Assembly (NCBI GenBank): GCA_048013815.1
Contig: CM106585.1
Coordinates: 14,818,001 to 14,882,000 of the forward strand
Direction: 5' to 3'
DNA length: 64,000 bases
Source of the DNA: Setoptus koraiensis
Taxonomy: Eukaryota; Animalia; Arthropoda
Under the pieces are notes generated by a model. That model made no database searches and was not told the DNA's origin. It saw only the letters and a list, made by a program, of their open reading frames with translations. Of this stretch, positions 30,772 to 42,806 are shown piece by piece. Each line of letters begins with the position of its first letter. The stretch's first letter is position 1. The translations under genes were made by a program, and so were the position numbers.

Positions 30772-33231
30772 ATGGTTATAATCAAACTACCCGAATCTGC
30801 GCCTCTCGATCCAGAGGATGAGGATTTCCTTGGCGTGATGAGTGAGAGCGAACCCGATGACGACGTAGATGATCCAGACTGGGAAGAGGTCAAGGCCAAA
30901 GACGATGACGACGATGAGGACGAGCTCGAGTTTAAAAGGATGCCCATATTGCCTGCCGAGGGTGTCGATATATTGATCGAGGACCATGGAAGTAGAAAGA
31001 CAAAGAAGAAAAGAAAAGAGTTGGACCTGAATGAGATTGTGCGCAAGCATGTAAATAGGCAAAAAATTGCGTTGCAATTGAATAAACACAAACTCAGTCT
31101 TGTATTGTTTGTTGCCAGAGGATTGCGTTTATTGAAAATTGCCAGATGTGATATAATAAGAGGTTTAGCTTTATCACTGGTGGATGATTGGTTTATGACA
31201 CGTGCAAAATCTTCCACCACTATTAGTGACAAAAACAACAACAGCAACAAAAAGGATACAATCGTCAGTAGTAAGCGGAAGACTAATGCGGCCAACAGCA
31301 AGAGGAAGGCCTCAGCTAGATCCTCAACAAAGAAGATTTGTCTCGAAGAGGAAATTGAAGATGTCACAGAGCAAGGAGAGAGTTCCACCGGTGAACGTGA
31401 ATTTATTCTTGAATTCTTGGAATGGTTCAGCAAACGAGTGGCCATTTGTGACGATGACGACGTACGCGCGATGCACCTCAAAAATGCCTTCATGATCAAT
31501 CTTCTCAATTGTTTCAGTAACCTACATGTGACCAGCCTCATCGAGCTTGTTTTAATATGTGCTGCCTGCTTGAAAGCTATAAAACCAAATCTACCTGTGA
31601 GAATTCTCAATATACTGCGTCCTATTACCATGAGGGCCGATATCATACCAAAGAACGCCAACAACGTAACTCAGGATATTAACGAGAGTATTTTTGGCGA
31701 TCAATCAACTAGCAACTGTGTAGAACAATCAAAGAAGGAAAAAGATGCACCGCCGTCAATTGAAGAAAATCATTCCTCGCATCTCCTCACCGACGGCCAG
31801 AGAAAACTCGATATCGACTTTTTAATCGTTTCCAATTTAGACATGGCCCCAGAAAGTTCGGAAAAGGCTAAGAAAGTGTCCACATCTAAGAAGGTGAAGA
31901 AACCTGAGCCACATGAGCAGGAACCAATCAAAGAGCCCACCAAGCGGAGAACCTCCAGAGTTACTAAGGTCAAGAGTGAAACGTATCGAGAGGCTCCCGA
32001 GGTCGAGGAAGAAGATGAGCCTAGGGCAAAAAGGAGAATCAGCAAAGCCAAACCAAAGACAGATACTAAGAAGGGTAAGAAAAATATCAGTGATGACGAA
32101 GAAGAAGTTAACAAAACTAAAAAAAGGAATAGTGATACGAAATCAAGCAAAAAGACGGCTAAACAGCCAGAAGAATCTGCTCCAGAACCCGCTGGAGTTC
32201 CAGAAAAACTCGATTTTTGGTTAGAGATATTCTCAGAGAGCGAAAACAAATGGATATGTGTTGACGTCTGCAACAATAAAATAGATGAACCAGAAGTTCT
32301 CAATGAACTCAACAAGCCCTTTTATTATTTGCTCTCGTTTGATATCGACCGCAATTGTATCAAACCAGCGGAGCAATACTATTGTCCAGATTGGTATGCA
32401 CCAGCCTTCAAGCGCGAACGTTGCGATCCCAAATGGTGGCAGATGATCCTGGATGCCTACGGACCCTCAAAACAAAATGAAAAAGATGGTGCAGATGAGG
32501 CAAAATCTCAACAACTTCTAAACAAACAAGATCTACCTAAATCGGACAACGCATTCAGAAATCATCCTCTATACGTTCTACAGAAACACTTATTGAAGTA
32601 CCAAGTGATTTATCCCCCAGATTGTGTGCCTGTTGGCTACTTCAAAGATGAGCCCATTTATCCTAGAGATAGTGTTCACACATGTAGATCTCGCGAAACC
32701 TGGTTGCGTCAAGCGAAATCGGTGAAATTAGGCGAACAGCCCTACAAAATAGTTAAAGCACGCCCTAAAAAGGATAGATACACTGGCGATTATGTCAAAG
32801 ACCTCCCATTGGAAATCTTTGGTGAATGGCAAACCGAAGCTTATGATCCACCAACCGCGCAGGATGGTAAAGTACCGCGTAATATTTATGGAAACGTTGA
32901 TATGTATCAGCCATGCATGTTACCAAAAGGTTGTGTTCATTTAAAATTACCTGGCTTGCAAAAGATCGCCAATAAGTTAAATATAGACATTGCTGCTGCT
33001 GTCATAGGGTTCGATAGCCATTGCGGAGGTTATGGTTCTCATCCGGTAACTGACGGTTTTATAGTTTGCGAGGAGTACCAGGACACTCTGGAGGCAGCCT
33101 GGGATGAAGAGCAGATCAATGCTAGGAAGCGAGAGGAGGAAAAGCGCCAAAAGAGAATCTGGGACAACTGGAAGCGACTTTTGAAGGCAGCCATTATACG
33201 AGAAAAATTACGTGTTAAATACAAGGATTAA
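30772..33231 (+). CDS. XPC: XPC/Rad4 DNA-damage recognition protein, full-length copy (819 aa), intronless CDS
   Basis: Acidic N-terminus, a transglutaminase-like domain split by a K/E/R-rich disordered loop, BHD1-3 motifs, and a C-terminal helix (WDNWKRLLKAAIIREKLRVKY). Confidence 0.96.
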   Translation: MVIIKLPESAPLDPEDEDFLGVMSESEPDDDVDDPDWEEVKAKDDDDDEDELEFKRMPILPAEGVDILIEDHGSRKTKKKRKELDLNEIVRKHVNRQKIALQLNKHKLSLVLFVARGLRLLKIARCDIIRGLALSLVDDWFMTRAKSSTTISDKNNNSNKKDTIVSSKRKTNAANSKRKASARSSTKKICLEEEIEDVTEQGESSTGEREFILEFLEWFSKRVAICDDDDVRAMHLKNAFMINLLNCFSNLHVTSLIELVLICAACLKAIKPNLPVRILNILRPITMRADIIPKNANNVTQDINESIFGDQSTSNCVEQSKKEKDAPPSIEENHSSHLLTDGQRKLDIDFLIVSNLDMAPESSEKAKKVSTSKKVKKPEPHEQEPIKEPTKRRTSRVTKVKSETYREAPEVEEEDEPRAKRRISKAKPKTDTKKGKKNISDDEEEVNKTKKRNSDTKSSKKTAKQPEESAPEPAGVPEKLDFWLEIFSESENKWICVDVCNNKIDEPEVLNELNKPFYYLLSFDIDRNCIKPAEQYYCPDWYAPAFKRERCDPKWWQMILDAYGPSKQNEKDGADEAKSQQLLNKQDLPKSDNAFRNHPLYVLQKHLLKYQVIYPPDCVPVGYFKDEPIYPRDSVHTCRSRETWLRQAKSVKLGEQPYKIVKARPKKDRYTGDYVKDLPLEIFGEWQTEAYDPPTAQDGKVPRNIYGNVDMYQPCMLPKGCVHLKLPGLQKIANKLNIDIAAAVIGFDSHCGGYGSHPVTDGFIVCEEYQDTLEAAWDEEQINARKREEEKRQKRIWDNWKRLLKAAIIREKLRVKYKD

Positions 33232-35301: not shown

Positions 35302-38300
35302 ATGTACTCGTACGAGCGCGATTCGCGCCTCCACATGAAGGGTCACTACGAAACCAGCACTAGTAGTAGCCCCACCAGAAGAGGCAGAATCGAAAGAATA
35401 GAATCGCCCATAGCTAACCGCCAAAGTATCACCAACAGTATGAGCAGTGATCGTTTCAACGAGACGAGTCGTAGCCACAATAGATCAGTGTTAGAGGAAA
35501 GATTGCCAAATAATGGCCGATACAACCATATGAACGATATCACCCATCAAACTGCTACTCACGAAATGGATCATTTAGATTCAGACGATGTTAAATATCA
35601 CACCAAAACACAAATGGCGCAAGCCTCTCAAGAATCAAAAGAGCTGTATAGAAGTTCTCAAGATCGCGGCGGACTGAAAACAGTGAAAACAAGACGCATT
35701 GTCAAGAAAACCACCACCATAACCCGCGGTGAGAATGAAAAATTGGTAAGTATTCGGGCTATCTATGATTCATTGAATCGAAACTCCAACGGAGTAACTG
35801 ACTAGCTGAGAATATGTCGAGTCAGCAATGGCTAAACAGCTAATGGCGTTTTCTTCGGAATGGGGCTGATTGCAATCCGGGCAAGACTTGTGCGATAATT
35901 TCTTTTTGTTAGTTTGGGCAAAAATCTCAAATGAGCCTTGAGAGTTGAAATATTTCTCGAATACTATCTGTTAGCAGTGCGTATTCCTGCAATAGGCTGA
36001 AATAGCCCAATACAATCGCGCCAGCCGATAGCAATATCACCCAAACTGTTCGTCTTGTTGATCTCGACTATTGCTCGATAGAGGAGCGTCGGTGTTTTGA
36101 GGCCAGTGGGTTTTGTATCGTTTCTCTGTATTGTTTTACCTAATCGAGCAAATATTGTTTGGATTATCAACATTGTAGGAGGAGCCGGTCGACGACAAAG
36201 CTGAGCTTCGCGAAGAGCTCAGAAAGCATTTGGAATCGATCAAAAAGGAGTTGAACATTTTGGAGAAGCGCATCGATAATATGGCTCCAGTTGGCGACAA
36301 TATGCACACCCTTCGAAAGCAATTGATAGAGATGGAAGACTTCGAGCGACACTTGAGTAGGGTTCGCAGCAATTTGGACGAGGTAATAGAAATTGGTGGC
36401 GATTTTCTGCGCAACGACGAGGAATTGCGGCCCCAATTGAGAGATTGCCAAGAGCAATTGGCTCGTATTGAATCGAAGGCTTCGAAGAGATTGCGCGACA
36501 TTGACGCGGCTATGAATCGTGTGGACGCGGCCGATGCAGCCATGACACGATTCAACATTAAATTGGACGCATTGAAAAAGGAATTGAACGATCTGGAGCA
36601 TCGATTGGACTCGATGGCGCCAGTGGGCAAAGACTTGAAGACATTGCAACGTCAATTGAGCGAGATGGAGGACTTTGATCGTCGCATTCAAGTGGCCCAT
36701 GGTCATTTGGAGGAGATAGTGCAATTGGCAAATGATATGATACGCCAGGATTTGGTTAAATCGCCCAATGTTCTGCTAGATCAAATAGCCGAATGTCGTG
36801 CCCAATTGGAGCGCATCGAGCAGCGTGCAGCAAAACGGGCCCGCGAAATAGCCGATGCTCTGAATAAATGCGACGCTTCTGCGGCTGCCATGGCCAAATT
36901 CAATGTCCGCTTAGACGCCATCCGAAGGGAACTGGACGATCTTGAGCACAGACTCAATTCGATGGCCCCAGTGGCAAAGGATTTGCCCACGTTGCGCGAA
37001 CAATTGAAAGAGATGGAAGACTTCAATAAGCGCGTAGATAAATGCCGCCAGAACCTACAGTCGGTGATTGAGTTTGGCGAGGAGCTGATAGCCAAAGATC
37101 TGGTGCCCAATGTGAGACACTTGCGCGATCAATTGCAAGACTGCCAGGATCAATTGAAACGAATTGAGGCGCGAGCCGCCAAGAGAATGCGCGACATTAT
37201 GGACGCTTTGGGTCGCGCAGATGCCGCCGAGGCCGCATGGAGAAAATTCCAGCTGAAACTAGACGCAATCAAGAAGGAATTGGACGATCTTGAGCGCCGC
37301 CTAGACGGCATGGCGCCCGTAGGCAAAGACATGGACACACTGAGGGCCCAATTGGCCGAAATGAAGGACTTCGAGCAGCGGCTCAACAAGTGCAGACGCA
37401 ATTTGGAGGCCCTGAACGACTTTGGCGAGGACCTGATAATGCAGGGACTCATTGATAACCCGCGCCTATTGAGAGAGCAAATTCGCGACTGTCAATCACA
37501 ATTGGCCAGATTGGAGGCGCGAGCCGCTAAGAGATTGCGCGAAATTCAGGACGCCATGAATCAGGCCGAGGCGCGCGAGGCAGCGCTGAGAAAATTCCAG
37601 CTCAAATTGGACGCCATCCAGAAGGAATTGGACGATCTTGAGCGCCGCATCGACAACATGGCGCCTGTGGGCAAAGACATGGACACACTGAGGGCCCAAT
37701 TGGCCGAAATGAAGGACTTCGAGCAGCGGCTCAACAAGTGTAGGCGCAATCTGGCCGATCTGGCCGATTTTGGCGAGGATCTAATTCGCCAGAATCTCAT
37801 TGAGAATCCGCGTTTGTTGCGCGACCAAATTAAAGAGTGCCAGGCTCAATTGGCGCGCATTGAGGCCAAGGCAGCCAAACGTTTGAAGGCCATTCAGGAC
37901 GCCATGAACAGATCGGAGCAGGCCGAGGCAGCCATGCAAAAGTTCCGCATTAAATTGGACGCAATCAACAGGGAATTGGAGGAATTGGAGCGACAGGCAA
38001 AGAATTGGTCGGCACCAGGACGCGACCTGGCAACAATAAAGAGACAAATAAGCGACTTGCAAGAATTCAAATCGAGACTCACTAAGGTGGCCAGAATGAT
38101 AGACGAATTGACTGAATTAGGCGAGAGAATGATACGCGAAAATCTAATTGAGGAACCACAAGAGTTGCGTCACGAAGTGAAGCAATGCCAAACAAGATTA
38201 GCCCATCTAGAGGAGCTAGCCAAGGGCAGAGAGAACGAGCTCAATTGGGCCTTGAGCAAGGTGACCGAATTCAACAAATTGGCCGAAGATTTGAGCCAAT

Positions 38301-40550
38301 TCATTGATCGGGCCCAGCACAAATTGGACCGATTGACGCCCGTTGGTGGCGATTTAGAGACAGTGAAACGTCAAGTGGAGGAACTGAAACAACTGAAGAA
38401 AGAGGTCGAGCCCCGAGCCGTTGATGTGGAGCATCTCAATCGTCTCGGCCAAGAGCTTATGATCGGCACAACAGCGGACCAGGCCAGACCTATTCGGGAC
38501 ACATTGAACGACATCAACCAGCGCTGGAATAAACTCATCAAGGGCCTGAATTTGCGCCAGAGCAACCTAGAACAGGCACTGTTGCGCATAGGTCAATTCG
38601 AGTTGGCCATACAAGATCTACTTGATTGGATGAGCCAATGCGAGCGAGCCCTCGATAGGGTGCGTGTCATTCGTGGCGACGCCGAGCTGATCGAGGCCGA
38701 AATGTCAAAATTGAGAGCCATTCTCAAGGACATCGATGCTCATGCTGGCAGCGTCGACGAGATTAATCGCGCCGGAAAGAAACTCATCGAGGAACAGCAA
38801 GGCTCATATCAGGCACTCGAGTCTGTTAGACGAAAATTGGACGAGCTGAACAGGCGCTGGTCAGAGCTGAATGCGAAGGCTCAAAAGAAACGCCAAGATT
38901 TGGAGGAATCGTTGAAGGAGGCGCGAGCGTATGATCGCGAATTGGAAGAACTGTTCGGTTGGTTCAACGAAGTAGAACAGGCACTCAACAATCCGAAGCC
39001 CGTGGGCGGATTACCCGACACAGCCAGAGAGCAATTGGAGAAATTCATGGAATTGTATTCCGAGGTGAATACAAACAAGTCGCGCGTTGAAGCTGTTTTG
39101 GCTCGTGGCGACGAACTCATTCGTAGAGCCACCGAGGGTTGCGCCAGTCAATTGAAGAGCAATGTCAAATTGTTGAAACAACGCTGGCAATCAATTTTGC
39201 AACGTTGCTCAGAACGAAAAGTTAAATTGGAGCAAGCGCTACGAGATGCCGAAGAGTTGCAGGCGGCAACGCAGAAATTTGTCGACTGGTTGAGCTCGGC
39301 AGAGAAACACATCAACGGATTGGAGCCAGTAAGTCGTGTAGTGGAGCGCGTCACAAAACAAATGGCCGAACACAAGGAATTCCAACGCGAAGTCAACAGC
39401 CACAGCGAAGAGTGGATTGCGTTGGATAGACGTGCCACCCAATTGCGACAGGTTTGTACAAAGCATGACGCAACAGTTATCAAAAACTTGATGACCAGTG
39501 TATCAAACAGATGGCAACGATTGGTGACTAAGACGGCGGAAAGGACCCGTGCTCTCGAGATTGGCTACAAGGAGGCCAAACAATTCAGTGATGCCTGGAA
39601 CGATCTGATGCGCTGGCTAGACACGGCTCAGGCCAATTTGGACACGTCAGAAGTGGACACAGACAATGTGGATGAGATAAGACAATTGATTGCCAAACAC
39701 AAGGAATATCAGCGAGCGTTAGAATCGAAACAGTCCACTTATGAGTCGGTGATGCGTATGGGCAGACAACTGAAAGAGAAGGCACCGCGTGTTGATCACC
39801 CTGTCATCCAAGAGATGCTCGACGAACTGAGAGACAAATGGAACAAGGTCTGGAACGCCTCGGCAGACAGGCAACGTCGTCTAGACGAGGCCCTGCAAGA
39901 TGCTCTGGATGCTCAAAGAATGAAACGTCCACCTGTCACCGAGCAAGAGATAATAGAGGACGAGGTTCAACGTCAAGTGGCTCAATGTACCTGTTTGCAT
40001 CGTTACAAGGTGTACCATGTTGGCGAGGGCCGTTACAGATTTGGCGAGTCGCAAAAGTTGCGTCTGGTTCGTATATTGCGCAGTGTTGTGATGGTTCGTG
40101 TGGGCGGCGGTTGGGAGTCGCTAGAGGAATTCCTTCAGAAGAACGACCCATGTAGAGGTGAGTACAACTTGCACAACTTCTTTTCCTCTTAATGTACCCA
40201 CCAACTGAGACACAAAAATTCCTAAAACTAACCTTTATCCTTTGTCCTTTATCACCTGATCAAATGAACGTGTAGCCAAGGGACGCACCAACGTCGAGCT
40301 GAGAGAGCAGTTCATATTGCCCGACGGTGCCTCACAAGCGCTGGCTTCGTTCAAGTCCAAGATGGCCAGAGATCCCGCCTCAGTGTCGCCCATTGGACCA
40401 GTGACCAAGATAAGAGAGAAGACAGAGAAATCGCTGCCAATGACGGGCGCCAGACAAGGCACTCCAAGTGATTATTACAGTGAGGAGGACGCCGGATTGT
40501 GCGGAGAACGTACCCGTTCTCGTAATCACACCGTCTCACCAGCATGGTAA
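35302..40550 (+). CDS. Short spectraplakin-like (Shot/MACF1/dystonin family) protein: spectrin repeats + GAR/GAS2 domain; exons 35302-35745, 36179-40157, 40276-40550; ~1565 aa
   Basis: GAR domain [54 protein letters not shown]; after splicing DPCR|[25 protein letters not shown] junctions are phase-compatible. An extra 3' exon is possible. Confidence 0.88.
36230..38300 (+). repeat. Six tandem coding repeats (first 333 bp, then 348 bp = 116 aa) inside the spectraplakin
   Basis: L(D/E)(A/S)(I/L)xxEL...(A)PVG/A-K/D unit starts at 36230, 36563, 36911, 37259, 37607 and 37955. Confidence 0.92.
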
Positions 40551-42034: not shown

Positions 42035-42125
42035 ATATTATTTCAGTAGCGCCTTATGGGCAGTAGATTCTAACGCTAGAGCTATTATAAACAGATCCGT
42101 GGGGTCAAACATCTACAGTAAGACA

Positions 42126-42806
42126 ATGGCTTCGGTAACGAAAAACAAGATCACCATTCACAGCATCAGGCCACTGAATCATGACGAATCGAAATATGTC
42201 CGTCCCATGCGAATGCATTTTAATTTGAATGGCAAAGAACGAGCATGGGATTGTTTGAAAGCCCACGACAGCGTATCTAGCGTTATATATAACAAATCAA
42301 GAGACCGCCTGATTTTTGTCAAACAATTCAGACCAGCCGTCTATTTGGCCGAGCTAACCTCGACATCCGACTTGAAAGAAATCAAGGTTGAACAACTGCC
42401 CAAGCCAGCAAAGGACACCACTGGCTACACCATGGAGCTTTGTGCTGGCCTGGCAGACAAGGAGGGCAAAACGCCTCAGCAGGTCATGCAGGAGGAAATA
42501 GAAGAGGAAACTGGTTATAAAGTGCCTCTTGAATCGGTCAAATTCGTTTCTTCATTCCGCGGATCAACTGGATTGAGTGGCACAAAAATGAGCCTATTCT
42601 ACTGTGAGGTGACTGACGAACAAAGAATCAACCAGGGCGGCGGTGTCGATGACGAGGCTATTGAGGTTCTAGAGTTGAGCGTAGCGGAAGCACGTAAGGT
42701 TTTGTATTGCCCAGACGAGGATGCACCTTACTCTAGGCCACCAGCCATGTTGTTCGGCACTAGTTGGTTTTTGACAGAACAGTTACCGAAAATGCAAAGG
42801 AGCTGA
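42126..42806 (+). CDS. NUDT14: Nudix hydrolase, UDP-glucose pyrophosphatase (NUDT14-like), 226 aa
   Basis: WDCLKAHDSV, LIFVKQFRPAVY, a Nudix box ELCAGLAD...EEIEEETGY, and C-terminal FGTSWFL. Confidence 0.9.
   Translation: MASVTKNKITIHSIRPLNHDESKYVRPMRMHFNLNGKERAWDCLKAHDSVSSVIYNKSRDRLIFVKQFRPAVYLAELTSTSDLKEIKVEQLPKPAKDTTGYTMELCAGLADKEGKTPQQVMQEEIEEETGYKVPLESVKFVSSFRGSTGLSGTKMSLFYCEVTDEQRINQGGGVDDEAIEVLELSVAEARKVLYCPDEDAPYSRPPAMLFGTSWFLTEQLPKMQRS

Follow-up and report, generated by a model that had tools for sequence, protein, structure and literature searches.

Spectraplakins are giant modular proteins that link actin to microtubules, and their regulation is thought to operate through contact of the actin-binding domain (ABD) with the end of the molecule that carries the EF-hands and the GAR (GAS2-related) domain. 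To our knowledge, every GAR-bearing isoform of Shot (Short stop) keeps its EF-hands. The subject of the present analysis is a gene on the plus strand of a 64,000-nucleotide stretch of the genome of the mite Setoptus koraiensis (GenBank assembly GCA_048013815.1, contig CM106585.1, positions 14,818,001 to 14,882,000; hereafter the window), in which a spectrin-type rod runs directly into a GAR domain. The sequence at positions 35302-40550 constitutes a genuine gene that stands alone and is maintained by selection; it is paralogous to the Shot/MACF1-type gene of the same mite (hereafter the sister gene) and starts at what is an internal alternative lead exon of the family. The account developed here as a whole, namely that of a maintained, lineage-specific paralogue encoding a rod that binds the microtubule lattice through its GAR domain with neither actin binding nor a fold-back switch, is one towards which we lean.

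The functions of the individual spectraplakin modules have been described in several studies (10.1101/122010; PMC3771950; PMC12084551). Specifically, the ABD binds F-actin, and Shot is inhibited by a fold-back of its EF-hand/GAR end onto this domain; the EF-hands of dystonin mediate the effect of calcium on microtubule binding; and GAR domains bind the lattice weakly yet stabilise microtubules (10.1101/122010; PMC3771950; PMC12084551). In a structure showing GAS2's GAR domain on microtubules, tubulin is contacted by a triple-Gly hairpin and a Trp residue (PMC12084551). Additionally, the C-terminal tail of Shot greatly strengthens microtubule binding, SxIP motifs recruit EB1, and spectraplakin genes possess several promoters and distant 5' exons (10.1101/122010).

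When compared with the spectraplakins Short stop, MACF1/ACF7, dystonin and VAB-10B, the window gene displays the same colinear rod, GAR domain, intron at the GAR end, and GAR-proximal tail. In contrast to these proteins, it has no CH1, CH2, EF-hand pair, plakin-SH3 match, Ser/Arg-rich tail repeats, or SxIP motif, and its product of approximately 1,565 amino acids (aa) and 11 repeats, six of which are clade-specific, stands against spectraplakins of 5,000-8,000 aa. Parallels are found among Shot isoforms: D-type isoforms likewise have no ABD (10.1101/122010), and the window gene resembles the C-type in starting at an internal lead exon, the sister-gene copy of which is joined to the CH2 exon by splicing. 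Unlike the C- and D-type isoforms, however, the state of the window gene is fixed as a separate gene rather than by promoter choice, and its EF-hands are deleted.

As read from the sequence, the gene comprises three exons with an intact frame, canonical splice signals and a coding sequence of 4.7 kb. Its features are as follows.

35302..35745, plus strand: exon 1, 148 codons from the ATG, phase 0, GTAAGT donor
35746..36178, plus strand: intron 1, 433 nt, GT..AG
36179-40157, plus strand: exon 2, 1326 codons plus 1 nt, ending in phase 1
36179..38266, plus strand: six tandem 116-aa spectrin-like units, exon 2 residues 1-696, delimited by autocorrelation, Tandem Repeats Finder (TRF) and a unit hidden Markov model (HMM)
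38267..39895, plus strand: five ordinary spectrin repeats, exon 2 residues 697-1239
39896..39952, plus strand: junction of ~19 aa between the last repeat (ending at exon 2 residue ~1239) and the Pfam GAR start (~1259)
39953..40157, plus strand: GAR domain; the exon ends in phase 1 directly after the last zinc-motif Cys
40158..40275, plus strand: intron 2, 118 nt, GT..AG
40276-40550, plus strand: exon 3, 91 aa with the split codon counted in, closed by TAA
40747-40752, plus strand: AATAAA, a probable polyadenylation signal ~200 nt past the stop

The existence of a coding exon upstream of the long open reading frame (ORF) follows from the structure of exon 2. The AG acceptor of this exon overlaps the sole in-frame stop upstream of the long ORF, 36179 is the first readable position, and the first in-frame Met is residue 35; since no ATG lies between that stop and Met 35, and similarity to the repeat units extends upstream of this Met, an upstream coding exon is required. 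Database and genome searches were conducted exon by exon, with the exon 3 tail read with the single split-codon base joined on.

Pfam analysis of the large ORF, a check suggested in the initial annotation of this locus, recovered Spectrin (PF00435) in 10 stretches (E 7e-96) and GAS2/GAR (PF02187; E 2e-31), with no match to CH (PF00307) or any EF-hand family at E<=0.01; exons 1 and 3 have no Pfam match. Within the rod, two kinds of repeat are distinguished. The first 696 residues of exon 2 consist of the six 116-aa units, with autocorrelation peaks only at lag 116 and a TRF period of 348 nt. An HMM built from the six units scores 150-183 bits on each of them, 105-139 bits on 3-4 units in each of ~14 Logan/JGI ORFs and in the Aceria tosichella MACF1 (P0074), 77 bits on the one unit that the sister gene contains, and only 20-57 bits on ordinary MACF1 repeats; judging by these scores, the unit type is specific to the eriophyoid-type mite clade. 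The five repeats that follow are of the ordinary kind and align at 47% identity over 542 aa, with no large gaps, to residues 795-1335 of the Oppiella nova MACF1 (P0001), and the last three are 50-54% identical to the repeated blocks of the sister gene.

The initial annotation had reported that the last spectrin repeat leads to the GAR domain within about 20 aa with no intervening EF-hand pair, and this description holds. Because the last repeat and the GAR domain lie in one uninterrupted exon, no EF-hand exon can lie between them. In relatives, approximately 450-465 aa, amounting to about four spectrin repeats and the EF-hand pair, separate the matching repeat from the GAR domain: the distance runs from residue 1335 to 1775-1785 in P0001 and from 1334 to 1800 in the sister gene. 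As the Pro/Thr/Glu-rich lead-in to the GAR domain is conserved in both mite genes, the right edge of the missing block falls just after the last EF helix. AlphaFold modeling of the last two repeats and the GAR domain yields a mean predicted local distance difference test (pLDDT) score of 90.3, with the two repeats at pLDDT 95-98; in this model helix C of the last repeat continues within a helix spanning 185-230, breaks at 231-235, and is followed by the GAR helix (236-249) and an alpha/beta GAR fold. The predicted product begins with a probably disordered lead and continues with eleven repeats of the spectrin type, the last of which is connected by about five flexible residues to a GAR domain of the zinc type; at ~5 nm per repeat, its rod would be ~55 nm long.

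The GAR domain itself is well preserved. It matches the MACF1 GAR domain of PDB entries 5x57/5ve9 (E 4e-31), the alignment bringing the Cys-x-Cys, Asp-Pro-Cys, GGG and Trp positions into register, and it retains the zinc-motif Cys and Asp residues, the GGG hairpin, and the following Trp, the last two being the elements that contact tubulin in GAS2 (PMC12084551). The tail that follows is short. Comparison with the tail exons of the sister gene (tblastn) detects one stretch of 37 aa at 68% identity and another of 30 aa at 50%, such that exon 3 is the counterpart of the first tail exon of the sister gene together with the start of its last; in the 91-aa tail, tblastn finds no counterpart of the sister's Ser-rich middle exon or Ser/Arg/Pro repeats, and a regular-expression search finds no SxIP motif.

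Absence of the remaining modules was assessed with six-frame profile scans covering the whole 48.8-Mb assembly (cut-offs E<=0.01 for CH, E<=1 for EF-hand_7 and E<=0.1 for SH3_10). In the 64-kb window these scans return no CH, EF-hand_7 or plakin SH3_10 match, and tblastn of the window, both introns included, finds no relic of the CH2, four-repeat or EF-hand segments of the sister gene, in agreement with the statement of the initial annotation that no CH or plakin sequence is recognisable there. A different outcome was obtained for its suggestion that the plakin module had been lost from this copy: SH3_10 has no match at either spectraplakin locus, neither the window gene nor its sister, so that the missing match does not set the window gene apart; a scan for the plakin family PF21020 returned no match anywhere, controls included. 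Given that spectraplakin genes employ several promoters and distant 5' exons (10.1101/122010), and that the sister gene has CH1-type matches 3-4 kb upstream of the lead exon, the window gene could be viewed as just the 3' portion of a more extensive transcription unit, with splicing adding CH, plakin or EF-hand exons from a distance. We consider this very improbable. Firstly, ordinary splicing cannot insert EF-hands into the single exon that holds the last repeat and the GAR domain. Secondly, same-strand neighbors flank the gene closely, with XPC ending at 33231 (2.07 kb upstream) and a NUDIX gene starting at 42099 (1.55 kb downstream), and on the window contig the nearest CH match lies ~797 kb away and the nearest EF-hand match ~369 kb away. 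Finally, the ATG of exon 1 lies at a position conserved among homologous lead exons. Concerning the neighbors themselves, the XPC/Rad4 gene (30772-33231) is a single exon encoding BHD1-3 and a transglutaminase-like domain, and the NUDIX hydrolase gene occupies 42099-42806 on the same strand as the window gene.

That the window gene is a separate paralogue, a possibility raised in the initial annotation, and not an isoform is established by the genome search for a canonical gene, which identified one on the other chromosome at C2 ~3263500-3273300 with CH, spectrin, EF-hand and GAR modules present. A 1,900-aa exon of this sister gene holds CH2 (CH E 3e-22), 12 spectrin stretches, an EF-hand pair (1737-1799) and a GAR domain (1811-1878); the one 116-aa unit of this gene lies only ~130 residues away from CH2. 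Its large ORF ends at most ~20 codons from the same GAR Cys-Arg, as would be expected if an intron occupied the position of intron 2 of the window gene. In total, four GAR-bearing loci are present in the genome.

The relationship between the two genes is evident from their lead exons. When used as a protein query, exon 1 of the window gene finds exactly one other copy in the genome, at C2:3266949-3267344, located in the sister gene between the CH1 and CH2 exons; the two are 49-54% identical, and the donor follows the same codon. Four further mite assemblies (L011, L014, L015, L016) likewise contain homologues, immediately upstream of the exon that carries CH2, and a conserved basic, Thr-rich motif stands right before the donor. 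Exon 1 is therefore, as initially described, a 148-aa first exon, but the novelty attributed to it does not stand given these clear homologues: it is a conserved alternative lead exon of the mite spectraplakin family that normally splices to the CH2 exon, and its equivalent in Shot is the CH2-only C-type start (10.1101/122010). In the window gene this exon is instead spliced directly into the array of 116-aa units. Relative to the sister gene, the window gene has lost access to the CH1 exons, CH2 and the first repeat from the 5' end of the large exon, an internal block of ~455 aa made up of the EF-hand pair and some four spectrin repeats, and most of the C-tail; one clade-specific 116-aa unit has been expanded to six copies. 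The proposal of a concerted loss of ABD and EF-hands is accordingly borne out insofar as both are absent, and three further relatives described below (P0171, P0230 and P0231) fit it; it is incomplete insofar as about four spectrin repeats and the Ser/Arg-rich C-tail have gone as well.

Extensive loss of this kind could signify a decaying or functionless duplicate, its open frame being left over from a partial gene copy. Most modules important for Shot function have been lost, the GAR domains of P0171 and P0230 are degenerate and have no Pfam match, and no orthologue of the window gene was found among 1.84 billion representatives. Measures of divergence nonetheless render such decay improbable. 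The GAR domains of the window gene and its sister are 91-93% identical, with at most 85% identity between the window GAR and any other sequence, and yet third codon positions of the two genes are only 37-47% identical (~47% in the GAR domain). Nonsynonymous divergence (dN) between the genes is 0.029 for the GAR domain, against 0.38 for the repeats and 0.41 for exon 1, and synonymous divergence (dS) is saturated and not computable, which indicates that the duplication is old; the 4.7-kb frame has stayed open regardless. Recent gene conversion was considered as the cause of the GAR identity and rejected on the grounds of the third positions and the saturated dS. In addition, units 4 and 5, which were duplicated within the window gene, differ with a dN/dS of 0.14-0.19, which demonstrates constraint on the window gene itself, and the canonical splice signals, the conserved donor position, and a GAR domain in which zinc motif, G-hairpin and Trp are all intact point in the same direction.

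Searches for comparable genes were extended beyond the mite genome. An exhaustive phmmer search with the segment from unit 6 through the GAR domain returned 2,082 relatives, with none exceeding 46% identity among the best 150 of 2,082, and the best-matching stretches, with few exceptions, reach no further than the last repeat. The sole representative whose best match spans the repeat-GAR junction, Tetranychus urticae P0073, was rejected as an EF-less counterpart, as weak EF-hand matches lie at 1916-1980 just before its GAR domain. Other eriophyoid-type ORFs encode CH2, one repeat, 3-4 units, four distal repeats, EF-hands and a GAR domain, with none of the five proximal repeats. This layout and the Aceria match place the mite among the eriophyoids. 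A further variant is seen in P0019 (a Logan ORF of 1207 aa), which has CH2 and several repeats, the last proximal one leading straight into the EF-hand pair (1076-1132) and the GAR domain; here the four distal repeats have been lost and the EF-hands retained.

Three genes show losses comparable to those of the window gene. P0171 (919 aa; L013:10001-12760) consists of the lead exon followed by three units and four distal repeats, from which ~25 residues lead to a degenerate GAR domain without zinc cysteines or a Pfam GAR match; it has no CH or EF-hand and comes from the same sequencing run as a canonical gene, P0080. P0230 (991 aa; L017:254-3229) is similar, with no CH, no Pfam EF-hand or GAR match even at E 1, and a degenerate GAR domain without zinc cysteines. 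In P0231 (1182 aa; L018:353-3901) the lead exon is fused directly to CH2, such that no CH1 can be spliced in, and two units, four repeats, ~25 residues and a good GAR domain follow; it has no EF-hand, the ~25 residues standing in place of the pair. All three thus share with the window gene the lead exon, the 116-aa units, and the absence of a detectable EF-hand, and P0171 and P0230 share the absence of CH as well. They differ from it in being intronless, in having four distal rather than five proximal repeats, and in standing apart on trees; moreover, the GAR domains of P0171 and P0230 are degenerate where that of the window gene is intact, and P0231 keeps its CH2.

These resemblances invite the explanation that the window gene belongs to an old, eriophyoid-wide family of ABD-less paralogues, orthologous to P0171 and P0230, with one origin and later remodeling in each lineage. 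P0171 and P0230 have the same unusual start, in which the lead exon runs straight into the 116-aa array with no CH2, and neither has recognisable EF-hands; P0171 coexists with the canonical P0080 in one sequencing run; and two independent deletions with identical end points seem unlikely. The window gene, however, has its closest relatives in its own genome: its lead exon, GAR domain, last unit and three-repeat block are each closest to the sister gene. In a three-repeat tree, a quick search involving long branches, it is sister to the repeated blocks of that gene (Shimodaira-Hasegawa-like approximate likelihood ratio test, SH-aLRT, 93), and it nests among arachnid spectraplakins. On the tree built from units, the nearest neighbor of window unit 6 is the one unit of the sister gene (98/95), and P0171 units group with those of P0080 (96/88); units cluster by species, and those of other species show positional orthology. 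A four-repeat tree in quick mode pairs P0171 with P0230 (96, with long branches meeting) and places the sister gene outside all others (99). The approximately unbiased (AU) test rejects the grouping of units from the three ABD-less genes in one clade (p 0.019) and does not reject a clade of the window units with the sister unit (p 0.40). Finally, the repeats retained are the five proximal ones in the window gene but the four distal ones in P0171 and P0230, as in the canonical gene of their clade, and no synteny is shared, the neighbors of P0171 being EMC3, an amidase and others rather than XPC or NUDIX. A single origin is therefore unlikely in our assessment. We read this as indicating that ABD-less copies were probably born at least twice separately, a pattern that concerted evolution of the repeats could mimic. 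The trees favor a DNA-level duplication that would have occurred in this mite's own lineage, early enough to saturate synonymous sites, and independently of the events that gave rise to comparable ABD-less copies elsewhere among eriophyoid-type mites.

Several points weigh against the reading of a maintained, lineage-specific, microtubule-binding paralogue. Support in the trees is moderate and involves long branches, and an AU p of 0.019 is not strong. P0171 and P0230 share the lead-exon-to-unit junction with the window gene, and there is perhaps one chance in several that an old shared origin has been masked by concerted evolution. Conservation and the reading frame are the sole basis for the predicted splice junctions, true 5' end and expression. 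Lastly, GAR alone is a weak binder that needs the C-tail in Shot (10.1101/122010), and with a truncated tail, binding by the window protein may be weak or partner-dependent.

Layouts reminiscent of the window gene are also encountered in more distant proteins. Members of the GAS2/GAS2-like family, such as Drosophila Pigs, similarly combine a GAR domain with no EF-hand pair, but they are short, carry a CH domain and have no spectrin rod, in contrast to the eleven repeats and absent CH of the window gene. The window GAR is at least 80% identical to spectraplakin GAR domains and matches GAS2 at only E 1e-11; GAS2-like GAR matches occur in the same genome at C2:17941249 and C2:1639357-1639777. In the bdelloid rotifers Adineta and Rotaria, P0081, P0084 and P0085 pass from a spectrin repeat to a GAR domain within ~20 aa with no EF-hand, aligning gap-free across the junction at 41-44%, and P0081 has no CH either; an EF-less repeat-GAR layout thus exists outside arthropods. 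These proteins belong to a distant phylum, have low overall identity to the window gene, and possess other N-termini (plectin repeats or a CAP domain), and their layout is most likely convergent.

Further rearrangements were observed around the sister gene. A young internal triplication of a ~325-aa, three-repeat block spans L008:3700-6620 (C2 ~3268700-3271620), with blocks 85-89% identical in protein, 79-83% identical at third positions, and a dN/dS of about 0.2-0.27. A third copy of spectraplakin CH2 is found at L020:1480-2784 (CH2 match C2:22887433-22887924); it is 66-69% identical to the sister CH2, begins at the boundary of the CH2 exon, and is in frame with downstream non-cytoskeletal sequence, with no accompanying copy of the lead exon. 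This piece, comprising CH2 and the first helix of the next repeat, corresponds approximately to the part that the window gene lacks. Transfer of the missing CH2 into this fusion was considered and not adopted: the pieces are complementary, but no test linked them. Two other long frames, one of 6486 aa with an EF-hand match (C2:14404171) and one of 2148 aa with CH-CH matches (C1:23136120-23137220), have no GAR domain and are presumably other spectrin-superfamily genes; as single frames they illustrate the intron-poor nature of the genome.

With respect to function, the window protein would be expected to bind and stabilise the microtubule lattice through its GAR domain, and it would be incapable of binding F-actin or of switching through a fold-back of the EF-hand/GAR end on an ABD. 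Loss of the EF-hands probably entails a loss of EF-hand-type calcium regulation, and the missing SxIP motif probably means that the protein does not follow growing ends with EB1. The conserved lead exon and the expanded unit array probably serve as an attachment to some partner or as a spacer. Viewed from its domain content, the description of this protein in the initial annotation as a constitutively open microtubule-binding rod is plausible.

A broader pattern may be proposed, tentatively and with some doubt, in which eriophyoid-type mites repeatedly spun off spectraplakin genes driven from the lead-exon promoter, each copy without a full ABD having also lost its EF-hands. Were this true, these genes would constitute replicated natural evidence that the EF-hand pair mainly serves the ABD-dependent fold-back switch, and the window gene would be the sole ABD-less copy with an intact zinc-GAR domain, a permanently "open" microtubule-lattice rod.

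Taken together, these data identify the window gene as a lineage-specific variant of a known family, and not as a new kind of protein or mechanism. Its 116-aa array exemplifies rapid change of repeat number within a spectrin rod. With its three further ABD-defective, EF-less relatives, it provides a comparative test of the evolutionary coupling between ABD and EF-hands, and its compact 4.7-kb coding sequence offers a construct with which to ask what a GAR domain on a rod does alone, although this plant mite does not serve as a laboratory model. Within a 49-Mb genome, and beside a sister gene with the full set of modules, this mite maintains a natural protein that consists of a rod and a GAR domain without either partner of the switch.

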